A stretch of 64,000 bases of DNA. Origin: Diplonema japonicum (lineage: Eukaryota; Protista; Euglenozoa: Diplonemea). The position numbers were made by a program, and so were the translations under genes. Shown piece by piece: positions 3,459 to 61,984 of this stretch; position 1 is the stretch's first letter; each line of letters opens with the position of its first letter. Location: contig OZ025728.1 in assembly GCA_964019335.1 (NCBI GenBank), positions 248,001 to 312,000 on the forward strand, read 5' to 3'. The notes below the pieces were generated by a model. It was not told the DNA's origin. It did no database searches and saw only the letters and a program-made list of their open reading frames with translations.

Positions 3459-3985
3459 AAAAACCGGAAAACACCGTTCAAAATTCACGCTACTCATACT
3501 CAGCAATTGTTCTGTCAGGCCCCCCCTCCCTTTTTTGGAAGAGCTGAACCCCTTTTTTTAATTATTTTCGATAACTGAGCAAAGAAGCTTATTGAAGAGA
3601 GAGAAAGACAACTATGTTTTAGCTGGTACAGGGGAAAGCTGAAGGAAACAGTCCTTGTGAGACCGCCTTAAGAGGTAAAAGGGAAATCCCTGATTGGGAC
3701 GGCCACACTTGGGAAAGGACCCCTGCGGAGTCTAGAAAGGAAAAGAAGGAAACGAGAGCGGGCTTTCATCGTTTCGTTTTTTTTTTTTTTTTTTTTGTTC
3801 CTTTTTTTCTTCGCAGAGTTTCGAAAAAAAACCGGAAAACACCGTTCAAAATTCACACTACTCAGCAATTGTTCTCCCTTTTTTGGAAGAACTGAACCCC
3901 TTTTTTTAATTATTTTCGATAACTGAGCAAAGAAGCTTATTGAAGAGAGAGAAAGACAACTATGTTTTAGCTGGTACAGGGGCAA

Positions 3986-4022
3986 CTGAAATGATTTTAA
4001 GTTAGAATAGAGAAGCGAAGAA
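3986..4022 (+). mobile_element. 37-bp insertion with 17-bp target-site duplication (intron-like element)
   Basis: agctggtacaggggcaa at 3969-3985 and 4023-4039. The sister unit at ~3621 lacks the insert. The insert is 33/34 identical to 60652-60685. Confidence 0.85.
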
Positions 4023-4506
4023 AGCTGGTACAGGGGCAAGCTGAAGGAAACAGTCCTTGTGAGACCGCCTTAAGAGGTAAAAGGGAAATCCCTAATTGGG
4101 ACGTCCGGCTTTCATCGTTTCGCTCTTTTTTTTCTTCGCAGAGTTTCGAAAAAAAACCGGAAAACACCGTTCAAAATTCACGCTACTCATACTCAGCAAT
4201 TGTTCTGTCAGGCCCCCCCTCCCTTTTTTGGAAGAGCTGAACCCCTTTTTTTAATTATTTTCGATAACTGAGCTAAGAAGAGAGAGAGGGGCAAATATGT
4301 TAACGGTCTTTGTCAGGCCGCCCTGGAAAAAGTTTGATAAATTTCGGTGGGTTTAGTTTCGATCTAATCTTGCGACTCCTCCAAGTGCTGATCTCTTCAG
4401 GCAAGTAGACCCTTCATTGGCTCCCACTAGCGTCCCAGCAGGTATGGAGAGTGGACAAGGCTATGGTAGAGCCAGGTCCTTAGTGGCTCCTGCGGGAGGG
4501 GGGGAA

Positions 4507-4732: not shown

Positions 4733-7013
4733 TAGCGGGTTGAAACAAAACATTCACTCTTGTATCCACGGTTCTCTCTGGGACTAAGAGGAAAGAACAC
4801 CTCATGTGTCGATGCTTCTTGGCGTAGTCAATCGCTGTGTAGCCATGCCTGTCCCGCAAGGCCACATCAGCTCCCTTCTCGACCAAGAGGGAAACACAGT
4901 CCTCGTCTCCATAACAAGAGGCGTAGTGAAGTGCGGTGTTGCCATCATTGTTCTGTAAGTTAACATTAGCTCCCTTCTCGACCAAGTAGAAAACACACTC
5001 CTTGTGTCCACCCATTGCGGCGTAGTAAAGTGCGGTGTTGCCATCACTGTCCTGCAGGTCTACATCAGCTCCCTTCTCGTCCTTGTGTTCACCCATTGCG
5101 GTGTTGCCATCACTGTTCTGAACGTTAATTGTAGCTCCCTTCTCGACCAAGATGGAAGCACAGTCCTTGTGTCCACCCTTTGCGGCAATGTGAAGTGCGG
5201 TCTTGCCATCACTGCCATTCAACTTAACATCAGCTCCCCTCTCGACCAAGAGGGAAACACACCCCTTGTGTCCACCCATTGCGGCGTAGTAAAGTGCGCT
5301 TCTACCATCACTGTTCGTCAGATTAACCTCAGCCTTCTCGACCAAGATGGAAGCACACTCTGTGTCACCACCTATTGCGGCAATGTGAAGTGCGGTGTTG
5401 CCAACACTGTTCTGCACGTTAACATCAGCTCCCTTCTCGACTAAGAAAGAAGCACTCCCCTCGTCCCTATCAATGGCCAGGTGCGGTGCACTCCCCTCGT
5501 CCCCATCAATGGCCAGGTGCGGTGCAGTGCTCCTCGTGTAAGCTCCTTGCTTTACCAAGTAGTCCTTGATTCTTGAATAAGCATCCTCGTGAAGTGCGGT
5601 GTTCTGCACGTTAACCACACCTCCCTCGACTAAGAACTCCTTTGGTAAGCCTACTCCAAGATCCAAGTACGATGCAACAGCATACTCAGCATACCTCTCA
5701 GCATACCTCGCACTTTCCTTTACCAAGTAGTCCATGATTCTTGAATAAGCAGCCTCGTGAAGTGCGGTGTTGCCATCATTGTTCTGCAAGTTAACATCAG
5801 TTCCCTTCTCGACCAAGAGGGAAACACACGCCCCGTGTCCCTTCGAAATGGCTATGTGAAGTGCGGTGTTGTCATCCTTGTTCTGCAAGCTAAGACTGGC
5901 TTTGTTCTCAACCAAGTGGGGAACACACTTTAATTCTCCAGTAAGAACGGCGATGTGAAGTGCGGTGTTGCCATCCTCGTTCTGCAAGCTAACATCTGTT
6001 CCCATCTCGACCAGGTAGAGGGATGCACACTCCTCGTATCTATTCAAAACGGCTATGTGAAGTGCGGTGTTGCCATTATTGTTCTGTAAGTTAACAACGG
6101 CTTTGTGCTTGACCAACTGGGGAAGACATTTTAGTGCTCCATTCCAAACGGCTATGTGAAGTGCGGTGTTGCCTTCCTTGTTCTGCAAGCTAACAACGGC
6201 TTTGTTCTTGACCAAGTGGGGAACAAACTTTAATGCTCCCTTCCAAACGGCTATGTGAAGTGCGGTGTTGCCATCACTGTTCTGCAAGCTAACAACGGCT
6301 TTGTTCTTGACCAACTGGGGAACACACTTTAATGCTCCATTCCAAACGGCTATGTGAAGTGCGGTGTTGCCTTCCTTGTTCTGCAAGCTAACATCAGTTC
6401 CCTTCTCGATTAAGAAGGATGCACACTCCTCGTAGCTCTTCGAAAGGGCTATGTGAAGTGCGGTGTTGCCATCTTTGTTCTGCAAGTTAGCAACGTCTTT
6501 GTTCTTGACCAACTGGGGAACACACTTTAATGCTCCGTTCCAAACGGCTATGTGAAGTGCGGTGTTGTCATCCTTGTTCTGCAAGTTAACATCAGTTCCC
6601 TTCTCGACCAAGAGGGATGCACACTCCTCGCGGCTCCTCCTAACGGCAATGTGAAGTGCGGTGTTGCCATCATTGTCCTGCAAGTTAACATCAGCTCCCT
6701 TCTCGACCAATAGAGAAACACACCCCTCGCATTCAGTGGACCTGTGAAGTTCTATCTCACCATCAATGTACTGCAAGTTAGCTTGTCTGCAAAAACACAC
6801 GAAGGGTTCAGGGATTATTTCAATACAACGTGCAATATGCAAAAGGGGTGAATGGCTTGGTGCTTTGCACGGCTCACAACGAGTAGGCCTTTGGTCATCT
6901 GCATCACTCTCGGCTACCGATAGAGCGTTGTTGGCTATTGGAGCGTTGTAGGGCTCGAACTTCTTTTCGTTGCGCACCGATACAAGAAAATCCACAGCTT
7001 CGCAGCCCTTCAT
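4728..7013 (-). CDS. Ankyrin-repeat protein (761 aa)
   Basis: Many 33-aa GNTALHIA...LVEKGADVNLQ repeats. Confidence 0.9.
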   Translation of the reverse strand: MKGCEAVDFLVSVRNEKKFEPYNAPIANNALSVAESDADDQRPTRCEPCKAPSHSPLLHIARCIEIIPEPFVCFCRQANLQYIDGEIELHRSTECEGCVSLLVEKGADVNLQDNDGNTALHIAVRRSREECASLLVEKGTDVNLQNKDDNTALHIAVWNGALKCVPQLVKNKDVANLQNKDGNTALHIALSKSYEECASFLIEKGTDVSLQNKEGNTALHIAVWNGALKCVPQLVKNKAVVSLQNSDGNTALHIAVWKGALKFVPHLVKNKAVVSLQNKEGNTALHIAVWNGALKCLPQLVKHKAVVNLQNNNGNTALHIAVLNRYEECASLYLVEMGTDVSLQNEDGNTALHIAVLTGELKCVPHLVENKASLSLQNKDDNTALHIAISKGHGACVSLLVEKGTDVNLQNNDGNTALHEAAYSRIMDYLVKESARYAERYAEYAVASYLDLGVGLPKEFLVEGGVVNVQNTALHEDAYSRIKDYLVKQGAYTRSTAPHLAIDGDEGSAPHLAIDRDEGSASFLVEKGADVNVQNSVGNTALHIAAIGGDTECASILVEKAEVNLTNSDGRSALYYAAMGGHKGCVSLLVERGADVKLNGSDGKTALHIAAKGGHKDCASILVEKGATINVQNSDGNTAMGEHKDEKGADVDLQDSDGNTALYYAAMGGHKECVFYLVEKGANVNLQNNDGNTALHYASCYGDEDCVSLLVEKGADVALRDRHGYTAIDYAKKHRHMRCSFLLVPERTVDTRVNVLFQPAK

Positions 7014-9148: not shown

Positions 9149-10711
9149 TATCTTGGTGTCCCCACACCGCACCAACATCCCCCCCTTGCCGTTACCCGAG
9201 ACAGCTATCTCACACACAGGGCCGCGTAAGAGGAAAGAACACCTCATGTGTCGATGCTTCTTGGCGTAGTCAATCGCTGTGTAGCCATGCCTGTCCCGCA
9301 AGGCCACATCAGCTCCCTTCTCGACCAAGAGGGAAACACAGTCCTCGTCTCCATAACAAGAGGCGTAGTGAAGTGCGGTGTTGCCATCATTGTTCTGTAA
9401 GTTAACATTAGCTCCCTTCTCGACCAAGTAGAAAACACACTCCTTGTGTCCACCCATTGCGGCGTAGTAAAGTGCGGTGTTGCCATCACTGTCCTGCAGG
9501 TCTACATCAGCTCCCTTCTCGTCCTTGTGTTCACCCATTGCGGTGTTGCCATCACTGTTCTGAACGTTAATTGTAGCTCCCTTCTCGACCAAGATGGAAG
9601 CACAGTCCTTGTGTCCACCCTTTGCGGCAATGTGAAGTGCGGTCTTGCCATCACTGCCATTCAACTTAACATCAGCTCCCCTCTCGACCAAGAGGGAAAC
9701 ACACCCCTTGTGTCCACCCATTGCGGCGTAGTAAAGTGCGCTTCTACCATCACTGTTCGTCAGATTAACCTCAGCCTTCTCGACCAAGATGGAAGCACAC
9801 TCTGTGTCACCACCTATTGCGGCAATGTGAAGTGCGGTGTTGCCAACACTGTTCTGCACGTTAACATCAGCTCCCTTCTCGACTAAGAAAGAAGCACTCC
9901 CCTCGTCCCTATCAATGGCCAGGTGCGGTGCACTCCCCTCGTCCCCATCAATGGCCAGGTGCGGTGCAGTGCTCCTCGTGTAAGCTCCTTGCTTTACCAA
10001 GTAGTCCTTGATTCTTGAATAAGCATCCTCGTGAAGTGCGGTGTTCTGCACGTTAACCACACCTCCCTCGACTAAGAACTCCTTTGGTAAGCCTACTCCA
10101 AGATCCAAGTACGATGCAACAGCATACTCAGCATACCTCTCAGCATACCTCGCACTTTCCTTTACCAAGTAGTCCATGATTCTTGAATAAGCAGCCTCGT
10201 GAAGTGCGGTGTTGCCATCATTGTTCTGCAAGTTAACATCAGTTCCCTTCTCGACCAAGAGGGAAACACACGCCCCGTGTCCCTTCGAAATGGCTATGTG
10301 AAGTGCGGTGTTGTCATCCTTGTTCTGCAAGCTAAGACTGGCTTTGTTCTCAACCAAGTGGGGAACACACTTTAATTCTCCAGTAAGAACGGCGATGTGA
10401 AGTGCGGTGTTGCCATCCTCGTTCTGCAAGCTAACATCTGTTCCCATCTCGACCAGGTAGAGGGATGCACACTCCTCGTATCTATTCAAAACGGCTATGT
10501 GAAGTGCGGTGTTGCCATTATTGTTCTGTAAGTTAACAACGGCTTTGTGCTTGACCAACTGGGGAAGACATTTTAGTGCTCCATTCCAAACGGCGATGTG
10601 AAGTGCGGTGTTGCCTTCCTTGTTCTGCAAGCTAACAACGACTTTGTTCTTGACCAACTGATTATTATATGTACTTATAAAATATAAAATATAGCGCGCA
10701 TTCGACGACAC
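9002..10711 (-). pseudogene. Partial chimeric duplicate of the ankyrin gene
   Basis: 9227-10657 is nearly identical to 4785-6215. 9149-9223 matches 18992-19066. 10667-10730 matches 4565-4622. Confidence 0.8.
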
Positions 10712-10739
10712 TGATCAAGCGACTGGCACCTTCCAAAGA

Positions 10740-13700
10740 AGGGCCTCCCACGTCCGCCGGGTTGAGCAGAGGATGCCCCGGGGCGGCCGTTCCAGTCTGA
10801 TCATGTCGCACTATAATATGCTCTCATCTCCAAGGAGAAAAGAGGTTTTTTGCCCTCGTAGCTCGCCGGGCCAGCACTCTTACTTGCGTAAGGTCTTCGT
10901 GGTTCTTGGGGGGTGGCGCTGTCCCACATTATGCCACTGCAGCGTGGTGAAGAACAGCCAGTTAGTGGCCACGAAGTAGTGATCCTTCAAGGCTCTCATA
11001 TCTCCGTGCCGCGTGAACTGCTGCCGTCTCTCGACGTCCCCCTTCGCCTTCCAGCCTTCCGAGTCATACCTGGCCATGATCCACGTCTTGTCAAAGTCCA
11101 GGATGAGGGCGAACCGGACAAACTTCATGTGAATCCCGAGTTCCTTCGCGGTTTTAGGCTCTTCGCCAAGCACGTGTTTGCAGACCCGTATCATGGCTTC
11201 TGGCGTCCACTCCCCTTCCGCTTCGACGATCCCGGCCGTCGCCAGTTTCGTGTGGGAGAGCTTATCTTCCAGACCCGCTCGATGTTCTTCAGCCAGGGCG
11301 TGAACGGCGGCCTTGCCCGACCGTCGGTTCGCCCTGAGGAGGTCCAAGCGGTCTTTCTTCTTTGCGGGCTCCGCTTGTCCGTCGCACAACTGCCCGCGCT
11401 TCGCGCTCTTGGACCGCCATTTGACGAGCAGAGGTGGCTCTGGTGCACGATCTGTGCTGGTCCTTACCAGCTTGGTGTCGTGGCCAAGGTACACGTCCGG
11501 GCATGCGCCTCCCTTTCGCTTCTTCTTGTGGTGGCTTGCGAGGGGCGGGGCCGGGGCTGGGGCTGAGTGTGGGGCCAGGGCTTCGTCGCCGTCGTGGGTA
11601 GTGAGGCATGCCAGTTCCAGCTCCTCCGTCCGTGGCGCAGGTTCCGCCGTTTCCGATGGCGGGGTCGAGGTCGGGGCAGAGACTTTGTCGCCGTCGTCGC
11701 CAGTCAGGTCTATGACCAGGGGGTCGTCGTCTGTTTGCGTCGACTCTGTGGGTGGTGGCTCCAGCATGTACATGTCCCCCTGTGGGGGAGGAGGAGGTTC
11801 CGTCGCAGCAGTCAAATCCGCGGGTGGCTCCAGCATGTTCATGTCTCTGCTGTGCTGTGTCAGCTCCGGCATGTACAGGTCGTCTGTAGCCGACAGACCG
11901 GCCAGGGGTGAGAATCGTTCTGGGGTGCGAGGGAAGCACGCGGTCGTTGCGCTGTGTGCGCGTCTCGGTTGTGATCCGGGGCTTGACGTGCGACCTCTCG
12001 TGATGCCCACGACCTCGTTGGTGCCCCGGTACATCGGTCCACAGCAGACTCTGATGGACAGTCGTCGTTGTCCGCGTAAAAGAAGAAGAAGCAGAAAAAG
12101 AAGGAGGAGAAGTAGAAGTGCCCCGTCCTGACGCAGTCCTGCTACTGCTTTGCATCTGTCGTTGCGACATCGTCGTCAGAGCTAATTGCACCCAGGGCTC
12201 CGCTGTCGTCAAGAGGGGTGGTGGGGCGACCGCCTCCGTTGAGGGCTCGGGTTGCACCCATGTCGTCCATCCATGCTGCCCCAGAGGTTCAGACAGGTCC
12301 ATCTGCACGGGGACTGGGTCTGTTACGGGGAGGGCATCAACTTCGGGTAACGGGTCCGAGGCGAGGACCGGGTCAGACGCGGGGACCGGGTCTCTGGTGG
12401 AGGCTGCGCCTGATGTAGGAACCGGGTCTGCGGAGGGGATCGGACTAGAAGCGTGGACCGGGCCTCTGGTGGGGACTGCGTCCGTGACAGAGATCGGGCC
12501 AGGCGAACTGACTAGGTCCGTGGCGTAGACTGGGCCAGTTGTGGGCACTGGGTCGTCATGGACTATCGAGACCGGGCCAGATGCGGGGACCGGATCCGTG
12601 ACGGGGACCGGGTCAGCGATCGGGCTATTTGCGGGGACCGGGTCAGCGACTGGGCTGGCTGCGGGGACCGGGTCTGTGATGGGGGCCGTGTCTCCAACCG
12701 GGTTGGTTGTGGGGGCCGGGTCCGTGACAGGGACCGGGTTAGCTGCGGGGACCGGGTCAGCGACTGGGCTGGTTGCGGGGACTGGATCTGTGGCAGGGGC
12801 CGTGTCTGCGACCGGGTTAGCCGTGGAGACCGGGTCTGTGGTGCGGACCGGGTCAGCGACTGGGTTACTTGCAGGGACCGGGTCAACGACTAAGCTGGTT
12901 TCGGGGATCGCGTCTGTGATGTGGGTCGTGTCTGCGACCGGGTCAGCGACTGGGCTGGTTGTGGGGACCGGGTCTGCGACGGGGGCCGTGTCTGTGACTG
13001 GGTTAGCTCGGGTCGGGTCCGTGACGAGGGCCGGGTCCGTGATCGGGCTAGCTGCGGTAACTGGGTCTGTGATGAGGACCGGGTCAGCGATTGGGCTAGT
13101 CGCGGGGACCGGGTTCGTGACGGGGGCCGTGTTCGCGACCGGTTTAGTCGCGGGGACCGAGTCCGCGACCGGATTAGCCGTTGGGGCCGGGTCCGTGACG
13201 GAGACCGGGCCAGATGTATGGACCGGGTCTGCAACGGGGGTCGGGTCAATGCTGTGGACCGGATTAGCGTCTGAGTCCGGACCAGGTGAAGGGACCGGGT
13301 CATCATTGGGGGTGAGGCTAGCTGCAGGGGTCTGGCTCAAACAGGGGCCTGAAACCGGTGGCATTACCTCGTCCTGCGCTCCCTTGATGCAAGCGTGGAC
13401 GTCGAACGCTTTTGGTCTGCCGCCGTTTTGCTCCCTTAAGGTCCTTGCTCTGGCCCAGCTTTCTTCGGTGATACCCAGGATGTTCTGTTCGTCATACATA
13501 CGTAGGACCTGCCTCAGTCCATTGACACGGTGTTCTTCCTCGTCTGTGTCCATCACGGTGTACCACGACCTGCCGGTTTTGATGGCTGTAGTCCAGTGGC
13601 CCGTCCTGGAGCCTTTCGGCGGGCCGATTACCAGAACTGGGTACCGTCCGCTCTTGACCACGCTCTGCAGCGAGGCCTCTTCGCCAAGGATCTTTTGGCA

Positions 13701-16672
13701 GGCAAGGGACAGGGTATCTTGGGAGAAGTCGCCTTTCTCGTTCGGCTGGTACTCCTTCGCATGCCCCTCGGTGTGCAGGGCGAGCTCCGAGGTACAGAGG
13801 TGGTGTTGGATTGTCTGCATCTCTGCGAACGGCATGCGTGCCAGCTCTGCGTAGTCTGCGATCCAGTTCACCACGGCCCAACCACACTCGAGGCCTACGC
13901 GTCCTTCGCCACTTTCCTGGTGTAGCGACGTGGGGTATTCCGATGTAGGTGTCTCCATTGGTGTCGTTTCCGTTGAGGGCGGCTGTTGTGGAGGTGGTTC
14001 CTTTTGCGAGCTCGTGTCAGCGGTGGAGGTGGACTCTTGTGTTGTCTGCGTCGGTTCGGAGGGGAGGGCTGTGCTCTTTCGGGGGTCCTTACGTCCCACA
14101 TACGCGAGATCCGGGTAGCATTCGTCAAGTTCGCGGCCTGCTCTGTAGTTCTTCCCTGCTTCGGTAAAGAAACTTTGGAGCTCCCCTTTCTCCCAGCCGT
14201 AGTTCTTGTTGACGCGCTCACAAAGGAACTCGTGGAATGCTCGGTTCAGGAGTTTGTGCTCGTGACCTCGATCGCGCAAACTGAAGTATGTCTTTGCAAT
14301 TTGCCTCTTGAAGTCCGGTGAGCTGTTGGTGAGGCAAAGCGCTTGCTGCATCATGCCCTTCAGGATACCTGGGCCTTGTGTTGAGGGAGCTGCTGTGTGC
14401 CCGTGTGTGAAACGCGTGGGCTTGAACTTCCAGTTCGCAGCCTTGTCATAGACTGACAAGCGTACCCAGTTGTTTTTCGGCGTTTCGTGCCGTTCGGTCC
14501 TGATCCGCATGCCGATGAACGGAACGTCGTCGTCGTTGTCCGACGTCTTGGCGTAGGACATCCCGTACAGCTCTTCGGGTGGGGGGGTCCGGGGCCCATC
14601 GGTATGCCCCGCACCTGGCGCAGAGCACGGCCGCCTTGCTCGACGTACGCGTTGTTAACGACGAATTCGACTAGTTCCTCCACCATCGAGAGGGAGTACA
14701 CTTTGTCGTCGTCTTCTGCATCCGCGAAGCTACTTCCGCTCTTGTTTATCACCAGCTCCTTCCCGGCGTGCTCGAAGGCTTCGCGGATTGCTCTGCCCAG
14801 GCCCTTTCGAAGGAGTCCCTGGTCCAGGTTGGAGTACATCGTTTTAAAGTCGTAGGTGGCGGGGACCTTCGACTTGAAAAACGTGTACCGCTGCTTGATC
14901 TCAGCCGCGACCTGCTCAGCTGATTCCACGATCCAGAAGCGGCGTACTCCGCTGAGGCCCGGATTCACCTCCTTGCTTCGGAACTCCAGGTCCTTCTCGT
15001 GCAGGGTGCGTTGTACAGCTTTTAGGAGGCTCGAGAGCTCTTTGTGCGCTCCTGTCATCGCTGCAACCGGTCTTGCTGCGTTCGTTGGGGCGGCGGCCTT
15101 GAAGGCGTCGTCGCGCTCGCCGTCGGAACCTGCAGCTAGCAGTCGTTCCATTATGGACTGCGTTGATTGTGCTTGTGGGTTGGTGCCTTCCTCCGTCGCT
15201 GCACGAGCGCAGAATCTTGATTTCCCGGGACGCTCCGGCTAGGGTTGAGCACACCCGACGCGCTCACGAGCTCCGAAAGCCTGGAACAAGACTTGGTCGG
15301 CTTCGTAAACCTTCAACGTTCCTACGGGCTCTACACACCAAAGCAGAGGCTACTCTGAACAAAGAGCTCCAGCAGCCCGTTTTTGATCCTAAGGTCCCCG
15401 AGCAGCTTAAATCAAAGCTAAAAGAGTTGCAGAAGGCTTTCGTGTTCTTGCCAGTCGACAAAAGCGTCCACGACATCGGCATGGTCTGCAAGACACACTA
15501 CCTACAACTGCTCCACGCCCAGCTCGACCGGCGAGTGTTTTGCAGAGGTACAAGAAGGGTAGGATACCGCCCACCATCTCTCTCGACGATGACGGAGAGG
15601 TACAGATCTCCAACAACGGCCACTATCAAGCAGTTGCTAGGAAGATCATGCACCTCCTGAACCACGAGGACCTGGCGACATACTCGTACGAACGCTGGCT
15701 TCCAAAGACCGTGGTACGGTACCTCAGTTTTGTGCGACGATACATAACAGGCAAATTCTACACAGAACGAGTCCAATTGCTGGAGAAAGGCCTCTCGCAC
15801 CGTCTAAGCCCCTCGGAACTGCAGAAGGTCAAGAAACCCGCAGACAACACAATCTGGTTCAAGACGGTGTTCGACCACAAGGGTAAGCAGAAGATTCCAT
15901 GGCACAAGATCTTCGGCGACCCAGCAGTCCGCACGGCATGCCCAAACCCGAAGATCTTGGACAGAGTTAGGGTTTGCAATCGACTTGGGAAGACAGTACG
16001 CTCCGCGGTGTGCAATGTCAGCCAGGTCAGCCTCGCTGGCATAAGACCGAAAACGAGCGATGTTGACCCATGCCCTTGCGCCAAGTGGAACTCCTCGCAC
16101 CAGCACGAAGGACACACATGCGGTATCGCCTCGGAGCTGACAGACGACGAGCAACTGCTGAAGATCCTAAGCATGGGTATGAAGTTCCGCCTGTCAGTCG
16201 ACGCGCTCACGAGCTCCGAAAACCTGGAACAAGACTTGGTCGCTTCGTAAACCTTCACTTCAAGAAAGCCCTCGCGTCTGAAAGATTGACGTTCCTACGG
16301 GCTCTACACACCAAAGCAGAGGCTACTCTGAACAAAGAGCTCCAGCAGCCCGTTTTTGATCCTAAGGTCCCCGAGCAGCTTAAATCAAAGCTAAAAGAGT
16401 TGCAGTTCTTGCCAGTCGACAAAAGCGTCCACGACATCGGCATGGTCTGCAAGGCACACTACCTACAACTGCTCCACGCCCAGCTCGACGGCGAGTGTTT
16501 TGCAGAGGTACAAGACATGGAGAACACAAGGCATAGCATCACAGAAGAGACTGAATCGTTCGGCATCAAGATCAAGTCGACGAAGATGCCATACCTTTAC
16601 GGGGCCATCAAGTTACACAAAGAACAAGTAGGCTTCCGGTGGATTTCTGGCGTGTCGTCCCGAGACCCCCCT
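10740..16672 (-). mobile_element. Penelope-like retroelement (Naiad/Chlamys-type RT) with Josephin-like domain; rearranged and defective
   Basis: Motifs on the + strand: CPC...HEGH...MGMKFR, FVFLPVDKS...VCKxHY, PYLYGAIKLHK...RWISG. Motifs on the - strand: FWIVES, TYDFKTMYSNL, RQVRGIPMG, FIGMRI, VYDK. No YxDD segment. Left boundary approximate. Confidence 0.85.
12320..13300 (-). repeat. Degenerate 18-bp coding tandem repeat (PVTDPV/PVADPV) in the PLE ORF
   Basis: Recurrent ggggaccgggtc units; Pro/Thr/Asp/Val-rich translation. Confidence 0.9.
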
Positions 16673-16808
16673 CAGTTTGCTGCCTGTTCGTCACCCTGAG
16701 CATCTGCTTCTCCCACTTGGGCGCTACCGGTGATGACCGACGAGGACAACAGCGAACAAACACATCTGATGTACCTCTTTATATTTCCATGTTATCCCCA
16801 CCACCTGA
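16673..16808 (-). mobile_element. Half of a SINE/SIDER-like copy (adjoining part inverted at 15202-15250)
   Basis: Matches 3343-3458 and 25795-25919. Confidence 0.8.
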
Positions 16809-43488: not shown

Positions 43489-44013
43489 TTAAAGCGAACG
43501 CATTGTTGGTTGAAGATCTTGGTACCCGTAAACATTCTGCGTGGGGAGAGTTTTTTTTTTTCTTTTTTTTTTTTTCTTTTTTTTTTTTTCCATACCGGGT
43601 TTTCTTCGATGGGGTGCTGCCACGTTTCGTTTTTAGTGGGGCTGTGGTCGTAGCGGCCCTTCCCGCTGTTCAGCTGCCAAGAGTCAAATCGCCTTCTCTG
43701 GACCTCGATGCCGGTGGGAGAAGGAATGTCAACGCTTGCCTCCTGCCAAGCCTGAATAGCCGTAGGGAAATGTATGACGTCATCAACAGTAGGAGTGTGA
43801 CGCCTGGGAACGTGAGTTGTTTTGAAAGCGGCAGCGTGGGAAGCATGGAGCGTGTGGGCACCATTGATGGCTTCCTTGCAGATCTCAGCAATGTGGTGTG
43901 GACGCAGCGAGATAGCCTCAGGAATGGCGGTGGATATCCCTGTTTGTTTTGCCAACCTCTTGACGTCAGACACGACATGCTCACCCTCGAAACCTTGCGG
44001 AAGCTTCACAGTC

Positions 44014-44045
<32 letters not shown>

Positions 44046-45082
44046 CTTTCGCATACCACTCTCCCCATTGTTATTTCCCACCGCTTTTCGTTAAAATCCA
44101 CCGCGGCAACCACCTCCGGATCCGTCCCTTCGACCTCCACCATCAACCTGTTCTCTGCATTAACAAACACCTTTACAGATGTACGAACAGGTAACTCTGT
44201 TGCGGGGTCTGGGAGCGTCGTTTTAAAGCAGCACTCCGACTCCTCCAACCCAGAGGACGTAAGCGGGACGCGAATTCTAGGAAGCCCCGAGGCTAGACTG
44301 AGGTCCGACACCAGCCCGGACCCTTCGTACCGCAGCTTTGCCAGACGGGTGGAGTGGTTGGTGTACAAGTTTGCGAACTTGAGATCTAAGTGGTTTGCAA
44401 GAGGATTGGAACCGGTGTCTGGATTTTTTTTAAAAAAAAAAAAGAAAAAAGTTTTTTATACCAAAACCGTCAGGGCCCCATTCCAACTCAGTGTCGTGGC
44501 TCCACCACTGGTCGTTCTTGCCGTTTGAAAGGATGTCGGACTTGACGGCGTCCCATTCACGGTTGGTGGCGGCGGGGTGTGATGCCTCCCAGGCTTTTTT
44601 CTTGCCTGCGTCGTGGCGGGTGATGAACCTCTTCACAGGGTCGGCGAGAAGCTCTTCGCGGTGATGGTCCGCTTTCATGCTGTCGAGGAGAACACTGACA
44701 TGGACAACAGGTGTGTGCGTTGTGCCGTGTGCAGTGTGCACGATGATGTCACTCCCGATTCGTGTTTCCCGTTGAAGGTCGAACTCTATCCCGCTCTCTG
44801 CCTTCACGAAGTCGATGGCGTCCTGGACCTCCTTGGCGGGGAGGAGATTGCGCTCGCTGCCGAGCAGAGCCGGCCGTCCTTGTCTGCCGTTCTTCACGAA
44901 CTCGTCGAGCTTTGTAGACAGGTTGTCGAGGATCTTGAACTCTTCGCTCGCCTCGCTCCCTACCCTCTCGTTCTTCACAATACCCGCCACCTCAACCCTG
45001 TACACAGCACTGGGGTCAAGCTTGACACCATCACGCGTGAATGGAAGACGAACCCGGTGTGACCCCGTGTTGGAACAGGTCT

Positions 45083-45116
<34 letters not shown>

Positions 45117-47813
45117 TTTATACCCCTGTCAGATCCTCGTTTAGGTCGAATTGTAGATCCCACAGCTCACCGGCCTTTTCGGCTTCGGTTTCCGTCTGTT
45201 ATTTTTTTTTGGTTTTTTTTTTTTTTTTTTTTTTTGATTTACCAAATGTGTATCCCCGTCGATGAGCTTTTGCAATTCACCGTTTGTAATGGCTTGGAGC
45301 AGCTCGGTCTCGACCCTCGCCACCCCGGAGTTGTGCTGTATCGATTCGACAAAGGAGTTGACCGCCCAGTCGCGTGCCTTGTCGATGATAATGCTGAGCC
45401 TCCTAGTCTCGGAAGACTCAGACGCCTCGCCGGCACTTTTTTGGAAGTCCCGGATCAACTCCCGCTTCTTCTGCAGGTTCTCAAGCTTCGACGTGTTCTT
45501 CTTGTACAACCCCACGTGCACCTTGTACCGGTGCTCGATTTGCACGTCGGCCCTCATTTTTTCCTCGTCTTGCTCTCTCTTCCACTTGTGGTACATTTTC
45601 GTGAACGCCCATTCATGGCGTTCCGTATCAGGAGTGGACACTGCAGCATCGTAAGAGTCGACCTTGGCCATGACCTCCTGGATCATTGACTCGGTGGACC
45701 ATCCATCAGCGGTGCTTTTTCGATTGTTCACGATTTGTGTGAAGGTGTGTTCTTTTTGTTCCTTCGATGCGAGCTTTACCTCGTAGCCCGGTTCCGGTAT
45801 CCACTTCCATGTGACCTGCTTCGTGCTCCCACAGACCCAGGGTTTGTCGGAGATGTTCGTGACAGCTACGTTTTCAACCTTTGCAGGGGATTCTTCTTCG
45901 GAGATTTTCAGCGTGATTTTACGGCGGAGGTGGCCTATACAGTGGTGAACGTCTTGCGCGGCCCATTTGACCATCGCAAGGGATTTCTGCTGTGTTCGAA
46001 GGTAGGGCTGGAAGCTTTTCAGAGTTGTCAGGTACGCCACAGCTTGCGTGTCCCGTCTCACGGCCTCCCTCGCCGAAGAAGCCGACTCTGTTGTCGTCCA
46101 GTCGCGATTGGCTGTTTTCGTGAAGAGCTCTGCTATGATAGAGTTTCTGTCATACACAGACAGATCACCAGGAGGCACGCTTGGGACCGACAGTTCACCG
46201 GTTTCAAGGTATTTCCCCGCCGCGGTTGAGCTCATGAGAAATGCTCTGGACATCTGGCTGTTGTAGTTCTGAATGTTGCTCCCGTTGCACACCATCCTGA
46301 GAAACTGGAAAAACGCCAAGCCCGGTTTTTCAGGGTCCGGTTTTGCGAACAAGGACAATCTTGCGAGAGCGTGCGCGGAGTGATCCTGAGAAAGCGATTT
46401 GAAAACCGACCGGAATGTCATGTTTTTGAACCTGGCGGCGAGCATTGCGAAGGGTTGTACTGGGCCTCTGTCGTTTGTCTCGTGGATCTTCATGGGGAAC
46501 GTAAATTGTGAGAGGAATTCCCATCTCAGCCACTCTCCTGCTGTGATCTTCCCCGAGATCTGCTCGTCGAGGATGGTTTGAATCGCGTCCTTGTCCTCGT
46601 CGTCCCATTCCGGGAATGGTTCGCCTGTCTTGGCCCAGTCTTTGAACGGGCTCAAAACCAGTTTTTCCGCAACGGATATCCAATCTTCTGATGTAGCGAG
46701 GTACGATGGTGGTGCTTCGCCTGTATTCAGCATCTTCTCGTACTTCCTTTCAAGGACTTCGCCGAGCTTTACGATGCTTTCCGCCGCGTTTTGTATCGTG
46801 GTTTTCAGTTCATCGTTGGTGAGCTCCAGCTTATTGTCCAAGAAAACCGAGAACTCTGTTTTCGACTCGGAAAGCTCGGAGAACGCTTTCCAAAACCCGA
46901 AACCGGCGTTTGATTTGTACCCCTCCACCAATTTCGTGAAGGATTCCTCGCCGATCTCGTCGTCGTCAGCTATACAGTGGTTCCATTCTGATGAAAACAC
47001 ATCGATCGACGCTTCCAGACGCGCCACCGCAGCGAGTTGTTGAAACACATCATCGACAAGAGCCCCGCTTGAAAGCGTTTCGGAAAAGTCGGCTAACCAT
47101 TCTGCCGATCGTCTGTATGTCATGAGCCCTGATCCGGAACCAGCGTTGGCCATGATTCCCGAGGAGAGGTTTTTGGTGATTTCAATGAAATCTAAACCGG
47201 TTGCGGGGATGTTCGATACTTTTGACAGGGCGGTGTATCGTGTTTGCAATTCTGCGAAGGTTACAGGGCTGATCAGCTGCTTAAACGATGTTGCGATGGG
47301 ACGGTACGCTGGTGTGAGCTCCCACGCGGCATTGATGGGATCGGGAGAGGACAGGACACCATGTGGGTCAACACACCCAACGTCGGAAGAAGTGTCCAGT
47401 TCGACTGGCGTCACGTTCCTTCTGAGAAAATATTCCACAGTCTGCGCGCCGGACCATGTTCGTTTGTACCGTCCTTTTCCGTCTTGGTTGGTTTCCTCCC
47501 ATGTAGGGAGGTCTCTTTCAACAGAAGACGCTCGTCGTGAATTTCTTTCAAGAGTTTTTCTGTGGTTCATGAGTTTTATTCTTTGTATCCGTTCCTCCTC
47601 TCGGGTCATCTCCGCCGTGTTGGTCTCATCTAGCTTAGCTGGCCGAAGCTGTTTGTTGTCCTTATGCTGTGTGTAGTCCGGCAAACCATAATACATCATG
47701 GAGTTCGAAAAGGGCTGCATGGTGTCGACATCCGGCTTGGGGTAGAGGTTCAGGTACCATCTCCGCTGGGGTTTGAGCCCGGCTGCTTTCTCAGCAAGGC
47801 CTCGCCGGTGCAT
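43489..47813 (-). CDS. 1362-aa hypothetical protein, six exons (45243-47813, 45124-45195, 44462-45080, 44057-44418, 43596-44012, 43489-43536)
   Basis: Five GT-AG introns join four listed ORFs in a single frame. The Arg-rich N-terminus could be a mitochondrial presequence (inference). Confidence 0.8.
43537..43595 (-). other. 59-nt GT-AG intron (poly-A)
   Basis: GTATGG-A-rich-CTCTCCCCACGCAG; gives a clean C-terminus NVYGYQDLQPTMRSL*. Confidence 0.7.
44013..44056 (-). other. 44-nt GT-AG intron (poly-A)
   Basis: GTATGCGAAAG-A(n)-TAG; joins MGRV|TVKLPQG. Confidence 0.85.
44419..44461 (-). other. 43-nt GT-AG intron (T then A tracts)
   Basis: GTATAAAAAAC-T-rich-A8-TCCAG; phase 1, joins PDGF-D-TGSNP. 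Confidence 0.85.
45081..45123 (-). other. 43-nt GT-AG intron (poly-A)
   Basis: GTATAAAC-A32-CAG; joins DLTG|TCSNTG. Confidence 0.85.
45196..45242 (-). other. 47-nt GT-AG intron (poly-A)
   Basis: GTAAATC-A(n)-CC-A9-TAACAG; joins DTHL|TETEAE. Confidence 0.85.
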
Positions 47814-59489: not shown

Positions 59490-61984
59490 TCAATATCGAA
59501 CACCGTTCCCAGTTACGGTAAGACCCCCCTGACGTGGCTTTCCTCGGGGGTACACATCGGACGCCCGGATAGCAGAGCCTTTAGTTTGCTTGCGGCTGTT
59601 CTGAAGCCCGGAGTTCGATCGCTGGGGGGCACGGACTTTGCTGTTCCTCAGGTTTTCCTTGAAACGATCCCAGTTCGACACACGAGGAGGCTCGTCGTCC
59701 TCCTCTCGAATCTCAAGATCCGGATAAAGCATCGACTTCAACGGCAGCCCAACACCATGTACACTGTCCTCGATAGCGGTGCTCGGCTTGGGAACAATGA
59801 AACTAGTATCGGGCACCTCAGGAAGGAGGGTAAGCGGCTGTGCGGGCCCCCATTTATTGACAACAACTGCCCTTTCGGAAGGCGGAGATGGAGGAGGCAG
59901 AGGTTGCGCGTGAGATGGTGCTTGTGCTCGTACTTGAGATGGTGCTTGTGCTTGCACTTGAGATGGTGCTTGTGCTTGTACTTGAGATGGTGCTTGTGCT
60001 TGCACTTGAGATGGTGCTTGTGCTTGTACTTGAGATGGTGCTTCTCTTTTAACAACCGTGGTGGTGGGTTTTTTGACGACAGTTGCCTCACTTTTTCTGA
60101 CAACAGTTGTTTCGCTGACGACGGCGTTGAAATTGTAGTCCAAATACAAATCGATCTTTACGTCCCCGGGCCTGAAGGTCATGGTGGTCGACCCCAAGGT
60201 GGAAGGTAGTTGCGTCCTCTTTATCATGACGCACTCCTCCCAATCGCGGTTCGTCGTGATCCTGATGCGATCCTCGTCCGAGTCCAAATAGCTGACCTTG
60301 AAAGCAACTTCGTCCAGCTCCGGGTTGTCCTCCAGGTATTGTGAAACCATGGTCTGGTGGAGTTGTTTGAAGTCGATTTTTTGAGGGACGGTGATGACTT
60401 TGATGTCGCCTTGTGGGTAGAATATCTTCACGCGGGTGCGGAGCAGAGTGTTTAAACGCTTCTGAAGATGGTTCCGGTCGGGGGCGTGGTACGCATTGTC
60501 GTCCATCTTCGCCGTCAACTCCGCGAAAAAGTCATCCAACTGCGCCGCCCTCACAAAGTCATCGTCGGGAAGATCCATCAAATCCTTCACCTCACAGCTC
60601 AACGACGCTGCCGTACGCCGCTGCCCGTACTGAATACAGGCCTCTTGGTACCTGAAATGATTTTAAGTTAGAGTAGAGAAGCGAAAAAAACATACACAAC
60701 AGTACACTCCCCTGTCCACATCTTATTGTTGTAGTGGTCAAGGTACATGTCGCATTCGTCAGTGGTGGGCGGGATGACCTTTCCGTTCGTGTCGTATACT
60801 GGTGCTCGTTCGATGTAGAGCCCGGTGGTCATTAGGTATTTGTTCGCCACCACGATCGCTTGAAGAAGGTGTTCTGTTGAAGTCCCGCTTGTTACGTTCA
60901 AATTGCTTACAATCTCGTGGATCTCTTGGGTTTCTTGGAGGTAAACTTCTGCGTGGTGAAGCGTCCCGTCGGTGTCCTTCATGCCCACAGATTCCGCGTT
61001 AGCAATGGCTGTTCGCACGGTGTCGATGTTGCCGGAGCGAAGGGCGGATTTCAAAGAAATTCTGGCCTCCTCGCCCCTTGTTAGTCTGTCTATCGTGGTT
61101 GTTAAGATTTGCGTCATGTCGTGTATCTTCAGCTCCATGACGCCGAGCGATTCCAACTCGTTAAGACACCTGTCGCGGGTTTCTCTTAATTCGACAATGT
61201 CCGTACAGGTCTGAACTGTCTCGTCGATGACAAGCTGGATCTTTGAGATGTTATCCCACGTCTTTGTAACGTCCGCAGCATTGCTTATGATTGTTGCGGT
61301 GAAACCGCTGTCGGTAGGGGGTAGATGGAGGTTTGAGATCCCCTTGCACGTTGACGCGACTATATCCATGTCTTGTTTGACCAAGCCGCAGCACAGTCGT
61401 AATGTGAGCACCCCTAGTTTGTTTTTTTCCGCGCATCGTTTTAAAAGCCTGGCGCTTGCATTGTACAGGTTTTCATCTCCGCAGTCGTTCAGCCCGTGGA
61501 CCACGGCATCTAGCGTTGCCTTGTGTTCGCTTAGCTGGTTTATGTCTTTTGTCAATGAGGGTAGCTTCCTACGGTATCCTGCTGTCACCTCCTTGACCCC
61601 TGCTGCGATGATCTTGTCGGTCGCCATGACAGAGGGGACTAACGTTGAAATAAGTGTTTTAAGAGAAGCAGGCAGACGGCTCTCGTACTTTGTTGCGAGG
61701 AAGCGGTACCGTGCGTCGCGGCCTCCTGCTGTGATGGGGCTGTGTTCGATTTCGGACAGTTGGGTTATGAAGTCCAGAAGTACTATGTTGTCACTGGGGT
61801 GCGGCGAAGCCGGGGAAGAAGAGGAAAAAGAGGAAGAAGAGGCGGGCATCACAACAGGCGGGTCGCCCTCCGTTATGGCCTGCGCCATCTCCATGCTCTC
61901 GCTCAGCTTCCACAGTTCCCACAAGACTGTTTCCGTGCTGTGCTGTGTTCGGTATCCGAGAACCTCTTCGATGTAACTATTCAT
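59490..61984 (-). CDS. 816-aa helical protein with PB1 domain; exons 60696-61984 and 59490-60651
   Basis: The intron joins ECTV-V-YQEACIQ...SLSCEVKD in frame. RVKIFY...FKVSYLDSDEDRIRITTNRDW is a PB1/OPCA pattern. Confidence 0.82.
59912..60043 (-). repeat. 24-bp coding tandem repeat (APSQVQAQ)x5
   Basis: gagatggtgcttgtgcttg(t/c)actt units. Confidence 0.95.
60652..60695 (-). other. 44-nt GT-AG intron derived from a mobile 34-37-bp element
   Basis: GTATG-T6-CGCTTCTCTACTCTAACTTAAAATCATTTCAG; matches the insertion at 3986-4019. Confidence 0.85.

Follow-up and report, generated by a model that had tools for sequence, protein, structure and literature searches.

Where does a spliceosomal intron come from when nearly all of its letters also stand at the end of a mobile element? 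The origin of spliceosomal introns is an old question, and the cases in which every base is explained are few. The intron considered here is 44 nucleotides (nt) long and interrupts a gene of the protist Diplonema japonicum whose product contains a PB1-type region. It lies in a stretch of 64,000 nt, contig C81:248001-312000 of the 62.5-Mb assembly of strain YPF1604 (the published genome has a stated size of 62.3 Mb; PMC13598402), and this whole stretch is referred to as the window; positions are those of the window unless another sequence is named. A first-pass annotation, made from the letters alone, had taken the intron for a copy of a tiny retroposed RNA of about 35 bp that yields ready-to-splice introns when inserted antisense in exons. 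The follow-up described here leads to a related but different answer. The intron was very probably created by retrotransposition of a Penelope-like element, a 3′-terminal stub of which became lodged in the coding exon and is spliced out exactly.

The intron and its removal

Two open reading frames (ORFs) on the minus strand flank the 44 nt, the downstream one in a different frame. Exon A (60696..61984) is known from the ORF list, has its ATG at 61984 and comprises 429 codons and the first 2 nt of a valine codon that the intron splits; exon B (59490..60651), which includes the PB1-type region, supplies the remaining nucleotide of that codon, a further 386 codons and the stop. Without splicing the exon A frame terminates at a TAA within the 44 nt, and excision of 60652-60695 fuses the two ORFs in phase 2 to give an 816-aa product. 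Read on the minus strand from 60695 to 60652, the interval begins with GTATGT, continues through a T-run, CTAAC (60671-60667, with its A 16 nt upstream of the acceptor) and an A-rich stretch, and ends in TTTCAG, with GTACC following the acceptor. The T-run, the CTAAC and the terminal TTTCAG had been pointed out in the first pass and are read directly in the sequence. These features are those of ordinary D. japonicum introns, of which there are more than 10,000 short ones, with 10,131 introns supported by RNA (PMC12621601): their median length is 41 nt, the donor is (G)/GTATG, and an unusual A-rich stretch lies upstream of a CAG acceptor (Thakur et al. 2025, PMC12621601). At 44 nt, and with the same donor, A-rich pre-acceptor stretch and CAG, the intron of the PB1-domain gene agrees with that consensus.

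The translation of exon A served as query in a protein search, and exon B was compared separately with the top match, P0001, an 816-aa ORF from a D. japonicum Trinity transcript in EukProt. Residues 1-429 of P0001 are 100% identical to exon A and residues 431-816 are identical to exon B (386/386); the protein is continuous over the junction, and the 44 nt are absent from it, as expected from the earlier proposal that they are an intron. D. papillatum, in which the orthologue is DIPPA_17255, and Artemidia motanka have homologues (38% and 31% identity, respectively) that are colinear and gap-free in the conserved CTV[VL]YQEACI block that is restored at the junction. Three sequencing runs, all with the kind of library unrecorded, also bear on the interval. 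Run X7 yields a 1969-nt contig with a joint that omits exactly 60652-60695 and has 0 mismatches, and the same joint is present in a contig of run X1, whose source is a relative with about 95% identity. Run X4, a deep DNA-like run from the same organism with a single-copy depth of about 600, retains the 44 nt, and no joint was seen in it. The X7 contig reaches 25 nt beyond the ATG on its 5′ side, to 62009, where 17 letters have no match, and the X1 contig stops at 62006; stops just 5′ of the ATG look like the 5′ end of a trans-spliced transcript, though this is not proof. With consensus borders, absence from a transcript-derived protein and restoration of a conserved frame, the 44 nt have what would be expected of a U2-type spliceosomal GT-AG intron.

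It is improbable that there is no splicing at all and that the stub is a recent gene-disrupting insertion in the assembled haplotype, with X7, X1 and the transcriptome deriving from an insertion-free allele, sub-line or relative. The unrecorded kind of X7, the uniform depth of its contigs and a contig total near the genome size would suit that explanation, as would the fact that X1 is from a relative, yet the deep DNA-like run X4 gives no empty-site joint. Also opposed to it are the complete identity of a Trinity transcript ORF to both exons, the behaviour of the X7 and X1 contig ends, which is that of transcript 5′ ends, and the presence in the insert of the species-consensus donor, branch motif and acceptor.

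From truncated copy to intron: a probable course

The 44 nt can be accounted for as 3 nt of target-site duplication (TSD), 3 nt of probable filler and 38 nt of element terminus. The upstream TSD copy, GTA (60693..60695, minus strand, as for the parts that follow), provides the GT of the 5′ splice site; it was read directly and was also returned by the TSD search as GTA plus 3 nt of filler. The next three bases, TGT (60690..60692), match neither element nor target and complete the GTATGT donor. The remaining 38 nt (60652..60689) align in sense to the end of the element reference, and their 34-mer is identical to that of one other copy (34/34 with L002) and nearly so to that of most copies of the same family, family A (33/34). 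The downstream TSD copy, GTA (60649..60651), forms the first bases of exon B, and with the next CC it reads GTACC, which fits the family target at +2 to +5. Two propositions of the first pass are thereby upheld: that the donor GTA mirrors the GTA(CC) after the acceptor, the donor GT coming from a duplicated target, and that the intron is a fragment of a mobile element which supplies the branch-like motif and the acceptor.

A sequence of events that would produce this arrangement is as follows. The element would nick YTRCC targets and copy its RNA from the 3′ end, ...CTAAC(N15)CAG; reverse transcription would often halt early, leaving the genome strewn with 3′-terminal stubs of 30-60 bp. Before the insertion the exon would have read ...GTT GTG TAC CAA..., and the stub would have entered it in sense at GTT GT|G TAC C, target-primed reverse transcription having halted 38 nt from the 3′ end of the RNA. 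The resulting locus would be exon...GTTGT, GTA (TSD), TGT (filler), the 38-nt stub ending in CAG, GTA (TSD) and CC...exon. Joined to the 3-bp TSD, the filler would complete GTATGT, the 5′ splice-site consensus of the species, and the element part would bring CTAAC, a branch motif of the form YTRAY, the A-rich stretch and, as its exact last bases, the CAG acceptor. The spliceosome would then take out stub, filler and one TSD copy and so restore the pre-insertion frame to the base.

On this course of events the site in the PB1-domain gene presumably had no intron before the stub arrived. A metagenome scan for relatives of the gene gave 194 pattern matches, among which there were 0 relatives. It is quite unlikely that the site already had an older intron into which the stub inserted, so that almost none of the earlier sequence was left. 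With more than 10,000 short introns in the species, landing in one is conceivable, but 38 of the 44 nt are element and the last base of the element is the last base of the intron. What remains is GTATGT, whose GTA repeats the bases after the acceptor, and neither a remnant of another intron nor a second TSD is visible within the 44 nt.

The source element and its targets

The 34-mer at 60652-60685 (plus strand) matches 3986-4019 (plus strand) in 33 of 34 positions, as had been noticed in the first pass, and a chance control gives an expectation of 0.00 for such a match (100 shuffles). The second site is, as had also been proposed, a discrete insertion with a TSD. By direct reading a 38-bp stub (copy c11; 3986..4023, minus strand) lies within non-coding repeat units, flanked in plus-strand reading by 3970..3985 and its perfect twin 4024..4039, a TSD of 16 bp, or 17 bp with the A before it. 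The corresponding target in a sister repeat unit (3622..3637) is empty and uninterrupted, with one mismatch.

These are far from the only two copies. Across the 62.5-Mb genome the 34-mer occurs 67 times with at most 3 mismatches and its last 20 nt occur 156 times, and a control pattern read backwards has 0 matches in the same genome. All aligned copies end sharply in ...TTTCAG, on the opposite strand to that favoured in the first pass. Measured from this common end they extend for 30, 31, 32, 35, 38, 38, 39, 40 ... 313, 498, 613, 751, 1055, 1212 and more than 1500 bp, and 23 of the 67 unique copies are stubs of 60 bp or less. The search for a longer parent ending in the 34-mer, which had been recommended, led to a Penelope-like element of 7.9 kb. 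Copies L038 and L041 have 8.3 kb in common and are 99% identical; in L038 two termini are 7877 bp apart, and a partial copy of about 400 bp precedes the full one. A genome junction search found 8 occurrences of the 3′ end joined straight to the 5′ end of the body. The element family is recently active.

The full copy has an ORF of 2152 aa on the strand that ends in TTTCAG, which makes that terminus the 3′ end, and the stub in the PB1-domain gene therefore lies in sense and not, as had been thought, antisense. A GIY-YIG nuclease domain was found at residues 263-303 (24.5 bits against a cutoff of 22.6, with the domain searched alone), N-terminal to a match to the reverse transcriptase (RT) family RVT_1, and a CPC motif lies between the two. 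The RVT_1 match spans YIDD and is weak (23.5 bits against the Pfam curated cutoff of 29.6); a long C-terminal extension follows it. A PDB sequence search with the element protein gave no match, and an Rfam search of the element detected no family, the hammerhead ribozyme included. A partial tandem arrangement, the pseudo-long terminal repeat (pseudo-LTR), frequent 5′ truncation and variable TSDs are Penelope-like traits that were all found. On these features of sequence the source is provisionally placed as a Penelope-like element of about 7.9 kb and of the type with an N-terminal nuclease. Its closest proteins, which include ones from D. papillatum and Rhynchopus, have GIY-YIG, an equally weak RT match and a UCH deubiquitinase domain. 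P0006 from D. papillatum, named ‘Kinesin-like protein 3’ (2811 aa), is 39% identical, along half of the query region, to the part of the element that spans nuclease and RT; in this public model a Penelope-like ORF has probably been fused with a kinesin.

The element resembles the Naiad and Chlamys Penelope-like elements (Craig et al. 2021, PMC8557442) in its order of GIY-YIG, CxC and putative RT, its pseudo-LTR, its heavy 5′ truncation and its lack of a canonical hammerhead. In some Chlamys elements of Chara braunii the ORF is long and is extended at its C-terminus by a cysteine-protease-like part (PMC8557442). The differences are that Naiad and Chlamys have microsatellite targets, as against YTRCC in D. 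japonicum, and that the D. japonicum element has a 3′ terminus resembling the 3′ half of a spliceosomal intron. A search of that paper met no mention of Euglenozoa.

That the mobile unit is instead a discrete A-tailed retroposed RNA of about 35 bp, which inserts antisense in exons and founds a family of ready-to-splice introns, is scarcely credible: copies of 38-41 bp are indeed over-represented (6 of 67 end in the T-run), the TSDs are long and variable and one copy is a spliced intron, but lengths form a continuous series up to an RT-encoding element of 7.9 kb with the same terminus, the supposed A tail runs on into element sequence in all longer copies, the polarity of the ORF makes TTTCAG the 3′ end, and only 1 of 67 copies is a convincing intron, with 2 sites in the genome having GTAT within 55 nt upstream of the terminus. 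What had been taken for a whole element is thus a 3′ stub in a 5′-truncation series, and its A-rich end is an internal T-run seen from the other strand, on the side of the 5′ truncation. Other identities were tried and set aside. A short interspersed nuclear element (SINE) of about 313 bp came from the use of a truncated copy as reference, and longer references extended the element to 7.9 kb; a SINE or small A-tailed retroposon is likewise rejected, the A-rich end being at the 5′-truncated side and running into element sequence in all longer copies. A spliced-leader RNA gene or relic, the first guess from a sharp-ended 34-mer in an organism that uses trans-splicing, gave way to the finding that the terminus is the end of an RT-encoding element. 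An Rfam search of the window found nothing.

The view that mobility is of the retroelement, target-primed type has held up. TSD length varies across copies from 2 to 30 bp and is often long, some copies having 1-7 filler bases. The target logo 3′ of the terminus, from 73 unique flanks, reads Y, T, R (96% at +3), C (97% at +4), C (95% at +5), T; G occupies +1 in 11% and T occupies +2 in 56%. With +1 G and +2 T together in about 6% of targets, and half of insertions in sense, roughly a few per cent of exonic insertions would be spliceable at birth, which would fit one survivor among about 156 copies. The target consensus Y-T-R-C-C-T equals the first six bases of the element body, TTGCCT (L038:1737-1742), and nuclease specificity may therefore not be the only thing that decides the target, which could also depend on base pairing with a ‘tail’ of read-through sequence on the template RNA. 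Stubs of 74, 90, 202 and 202 bp (L063, L064, L067 and L071) share one 30-nt flank, which suggests either that some other repeat was hit independently in several of its copies or that insertion has a hot spot there.

Against the proposed origin of the intron several points have to be set. Run X7, of unrecorded kind and with contigs that total about 63 Mb, close to the genome size, may be DNA with an empty site, and the transcriptome from which P0001 derives is taken by assumption to be of the same strain as the assembly. The RVT_1 match is under the Pfam curated cutoff, and the element is classed by its domain traits. The TSD in the PB1-domain gene is just 3 bp, and its +1 G is a minority base in the family (11%).

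The window contains a second, diverged Penelope-like element (10660-16700), which has 45-55% protein identity to the studied family and the 5′ part of which is inverted. An ankyrin-repeat gene of about 4.4 kb is interrupted by it in its second copy, gene and element having the same orientation; the two copies belong to a tandem duplication of that length with arrays of a 99-bp (33-aa) ankyrin repeat at 4821-6729 and 9263-10657. The last bases of this element, ...AATCAG, adjoin the ankyrin frame at 10660/10659, and the sister copy is intact at about 6215.

An intron-like terminus and the number of introns

In copies long enough to show it, the last 73-87 nt of the element (76 nt in 39 of 49) read GTATGC...CTAAC...TTTCAG. 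This is so for all 49, one of which has GCATGC. The cassette ends exactly at the boundary of pseudo-LTR and body (L038:9538-9613 and L038:1661-1736). The Penelope element of Drosophila virilis has a 75-bp intron of the 5′ untranslated region (UTR) in its pseudo-LTR, and Chlamys-3_cRei has a 5′-UTR intron across the pseudo-LTR/body boundary (PMC8557442). The 76-nt cassette of D. japonicum is alike in place, the resemblance being one at the level of sequence. A retrotransposed ‘spliced’ junction of pseudo-LTR and body, lacking the 76-nt cassette, had 0 matches in the genome.

The terminus may be splice-competent because the element itself makes use of it, and a retroelement with a splice signal as its terminus would be pre-adapted for intron making. 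A bolder proposal is that the terminus is the element's own splice signal, which would serve either to close a 76-nt intron or to receive the spliced leader and so set where the mRNA begins; each abortive sense stub behind a GT in an exon would then be born as an intron. Diplonemids would in that case have in Penelope-like stubs a lasting source of new introns, and family-B and older copies would include further examples; this is conceivable, though on balance it seems unlikely.

How many introns has the element made? The first-pass annotation had envisaged an introner family making many, and that part of its proposal is not supported. Host-gene context was followed for the 67 copies of family A, beside which family B has about 89, and one of the 67, that in the PB1-domain gene, is a convincing host-gene intron. 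After excision this site forms an open stretch of 823 codons, by far the longest among all short element copies scanned; the others give at most 379 codons, and are in transposon ORFs or lack a precise donor. Throughout the genome GTAT occurs within 55 nt upstream of the exact terminus at two sites, the intron at 60652-60695 and C85:363040-363094 (minus strand), the latter a candidate second stub-made intron. A genome-wide pattern search for GTAA within the same distance found none.

Three further copies were considered as introns and rejected. Copy c27 (L025, 55 bp) is at the 3′ end of a protein-kinase ORF and lacks a precise donor. Copy c45 (L053, 135 bp) is in a pogo-like DDE transposase ORF, where the sole in-frame GT would remove 9 nt, and copy c1 (L002, 39 bp), between a host ORF and the RT of a long interspersed nuclear element, is not convincing. 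The 55-bp stub of L025 (2819-2873) and its duplicate in L026 lie in sense at the C-terminal end of the kinase, within a segmentally duplicated part of contig C95; at L025 the kinase frame, if read on, meets a stop inside the stub.

On present evidence, then, the PB1-domain gene presents a single retroelement-made intron and no proven introner family. In common with introners (PMC12130899), such as the DNA-transposon introners of Micromonas and Aureococcus, it shows an exonic insertion that is precisely spliced out, a multi-copy and recently active source, and one splice site from the element with the other from the TSD. The Penelope-like element is moreover a multi-copy element with TSDs and with filled and empty sites, as introners are. 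The difference is that the definition of introners asks for many independent copies that act as introns in a range of host genes, as against one here (1 of 67 family-A copies), and that the D. japonicum intron comes from an autonomous element, as its abortive 38-nt stub, and not from a dedicated non-autonomous family. According to a survey whose main text mentions no Penelope-like elements and no diplonemids (Gozashti et al. 2025, PMC12130899), classified introner families are about 82% terminal inverted repeat DNA transposons, about 12% LTR elements and about 5% non-LTR retrotransposons. For the noncanonical introns of hemistasiids, origins from elements like miniature inverted-repeat transposable elements have merely been speculated (PMC12621601). 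Introns made by transposons are already known; what is new is the abortive stub of an autonomous Penelope-like element, with its donor from a TSD. Penelope-like elements thereby join the known sources of such introns, abortive target-primed reverse transcription joins the mechanisms, and the hosts come to include diplonemids, a group whose unusual introns are under study and for which a minigene splicing assay exists (PMC12621601).

Elsewhere in the window a single gene (43547-45242, minus strand) has five mini-introns that run from GTAT(G/A) through long poly(A) to CAG or TAG, a pattern that fits the A-rich stretch reported to precede the acceptor in this species (PMC12621601). One of them, 44013-44055, exemplifies how ordinary introns of the species differ from that of the PB1-domain gene: it is low-complexity poly(A), whereas the sequence of the latter was copied from a retrotransposon terminus, is datable as such and has its TSD.

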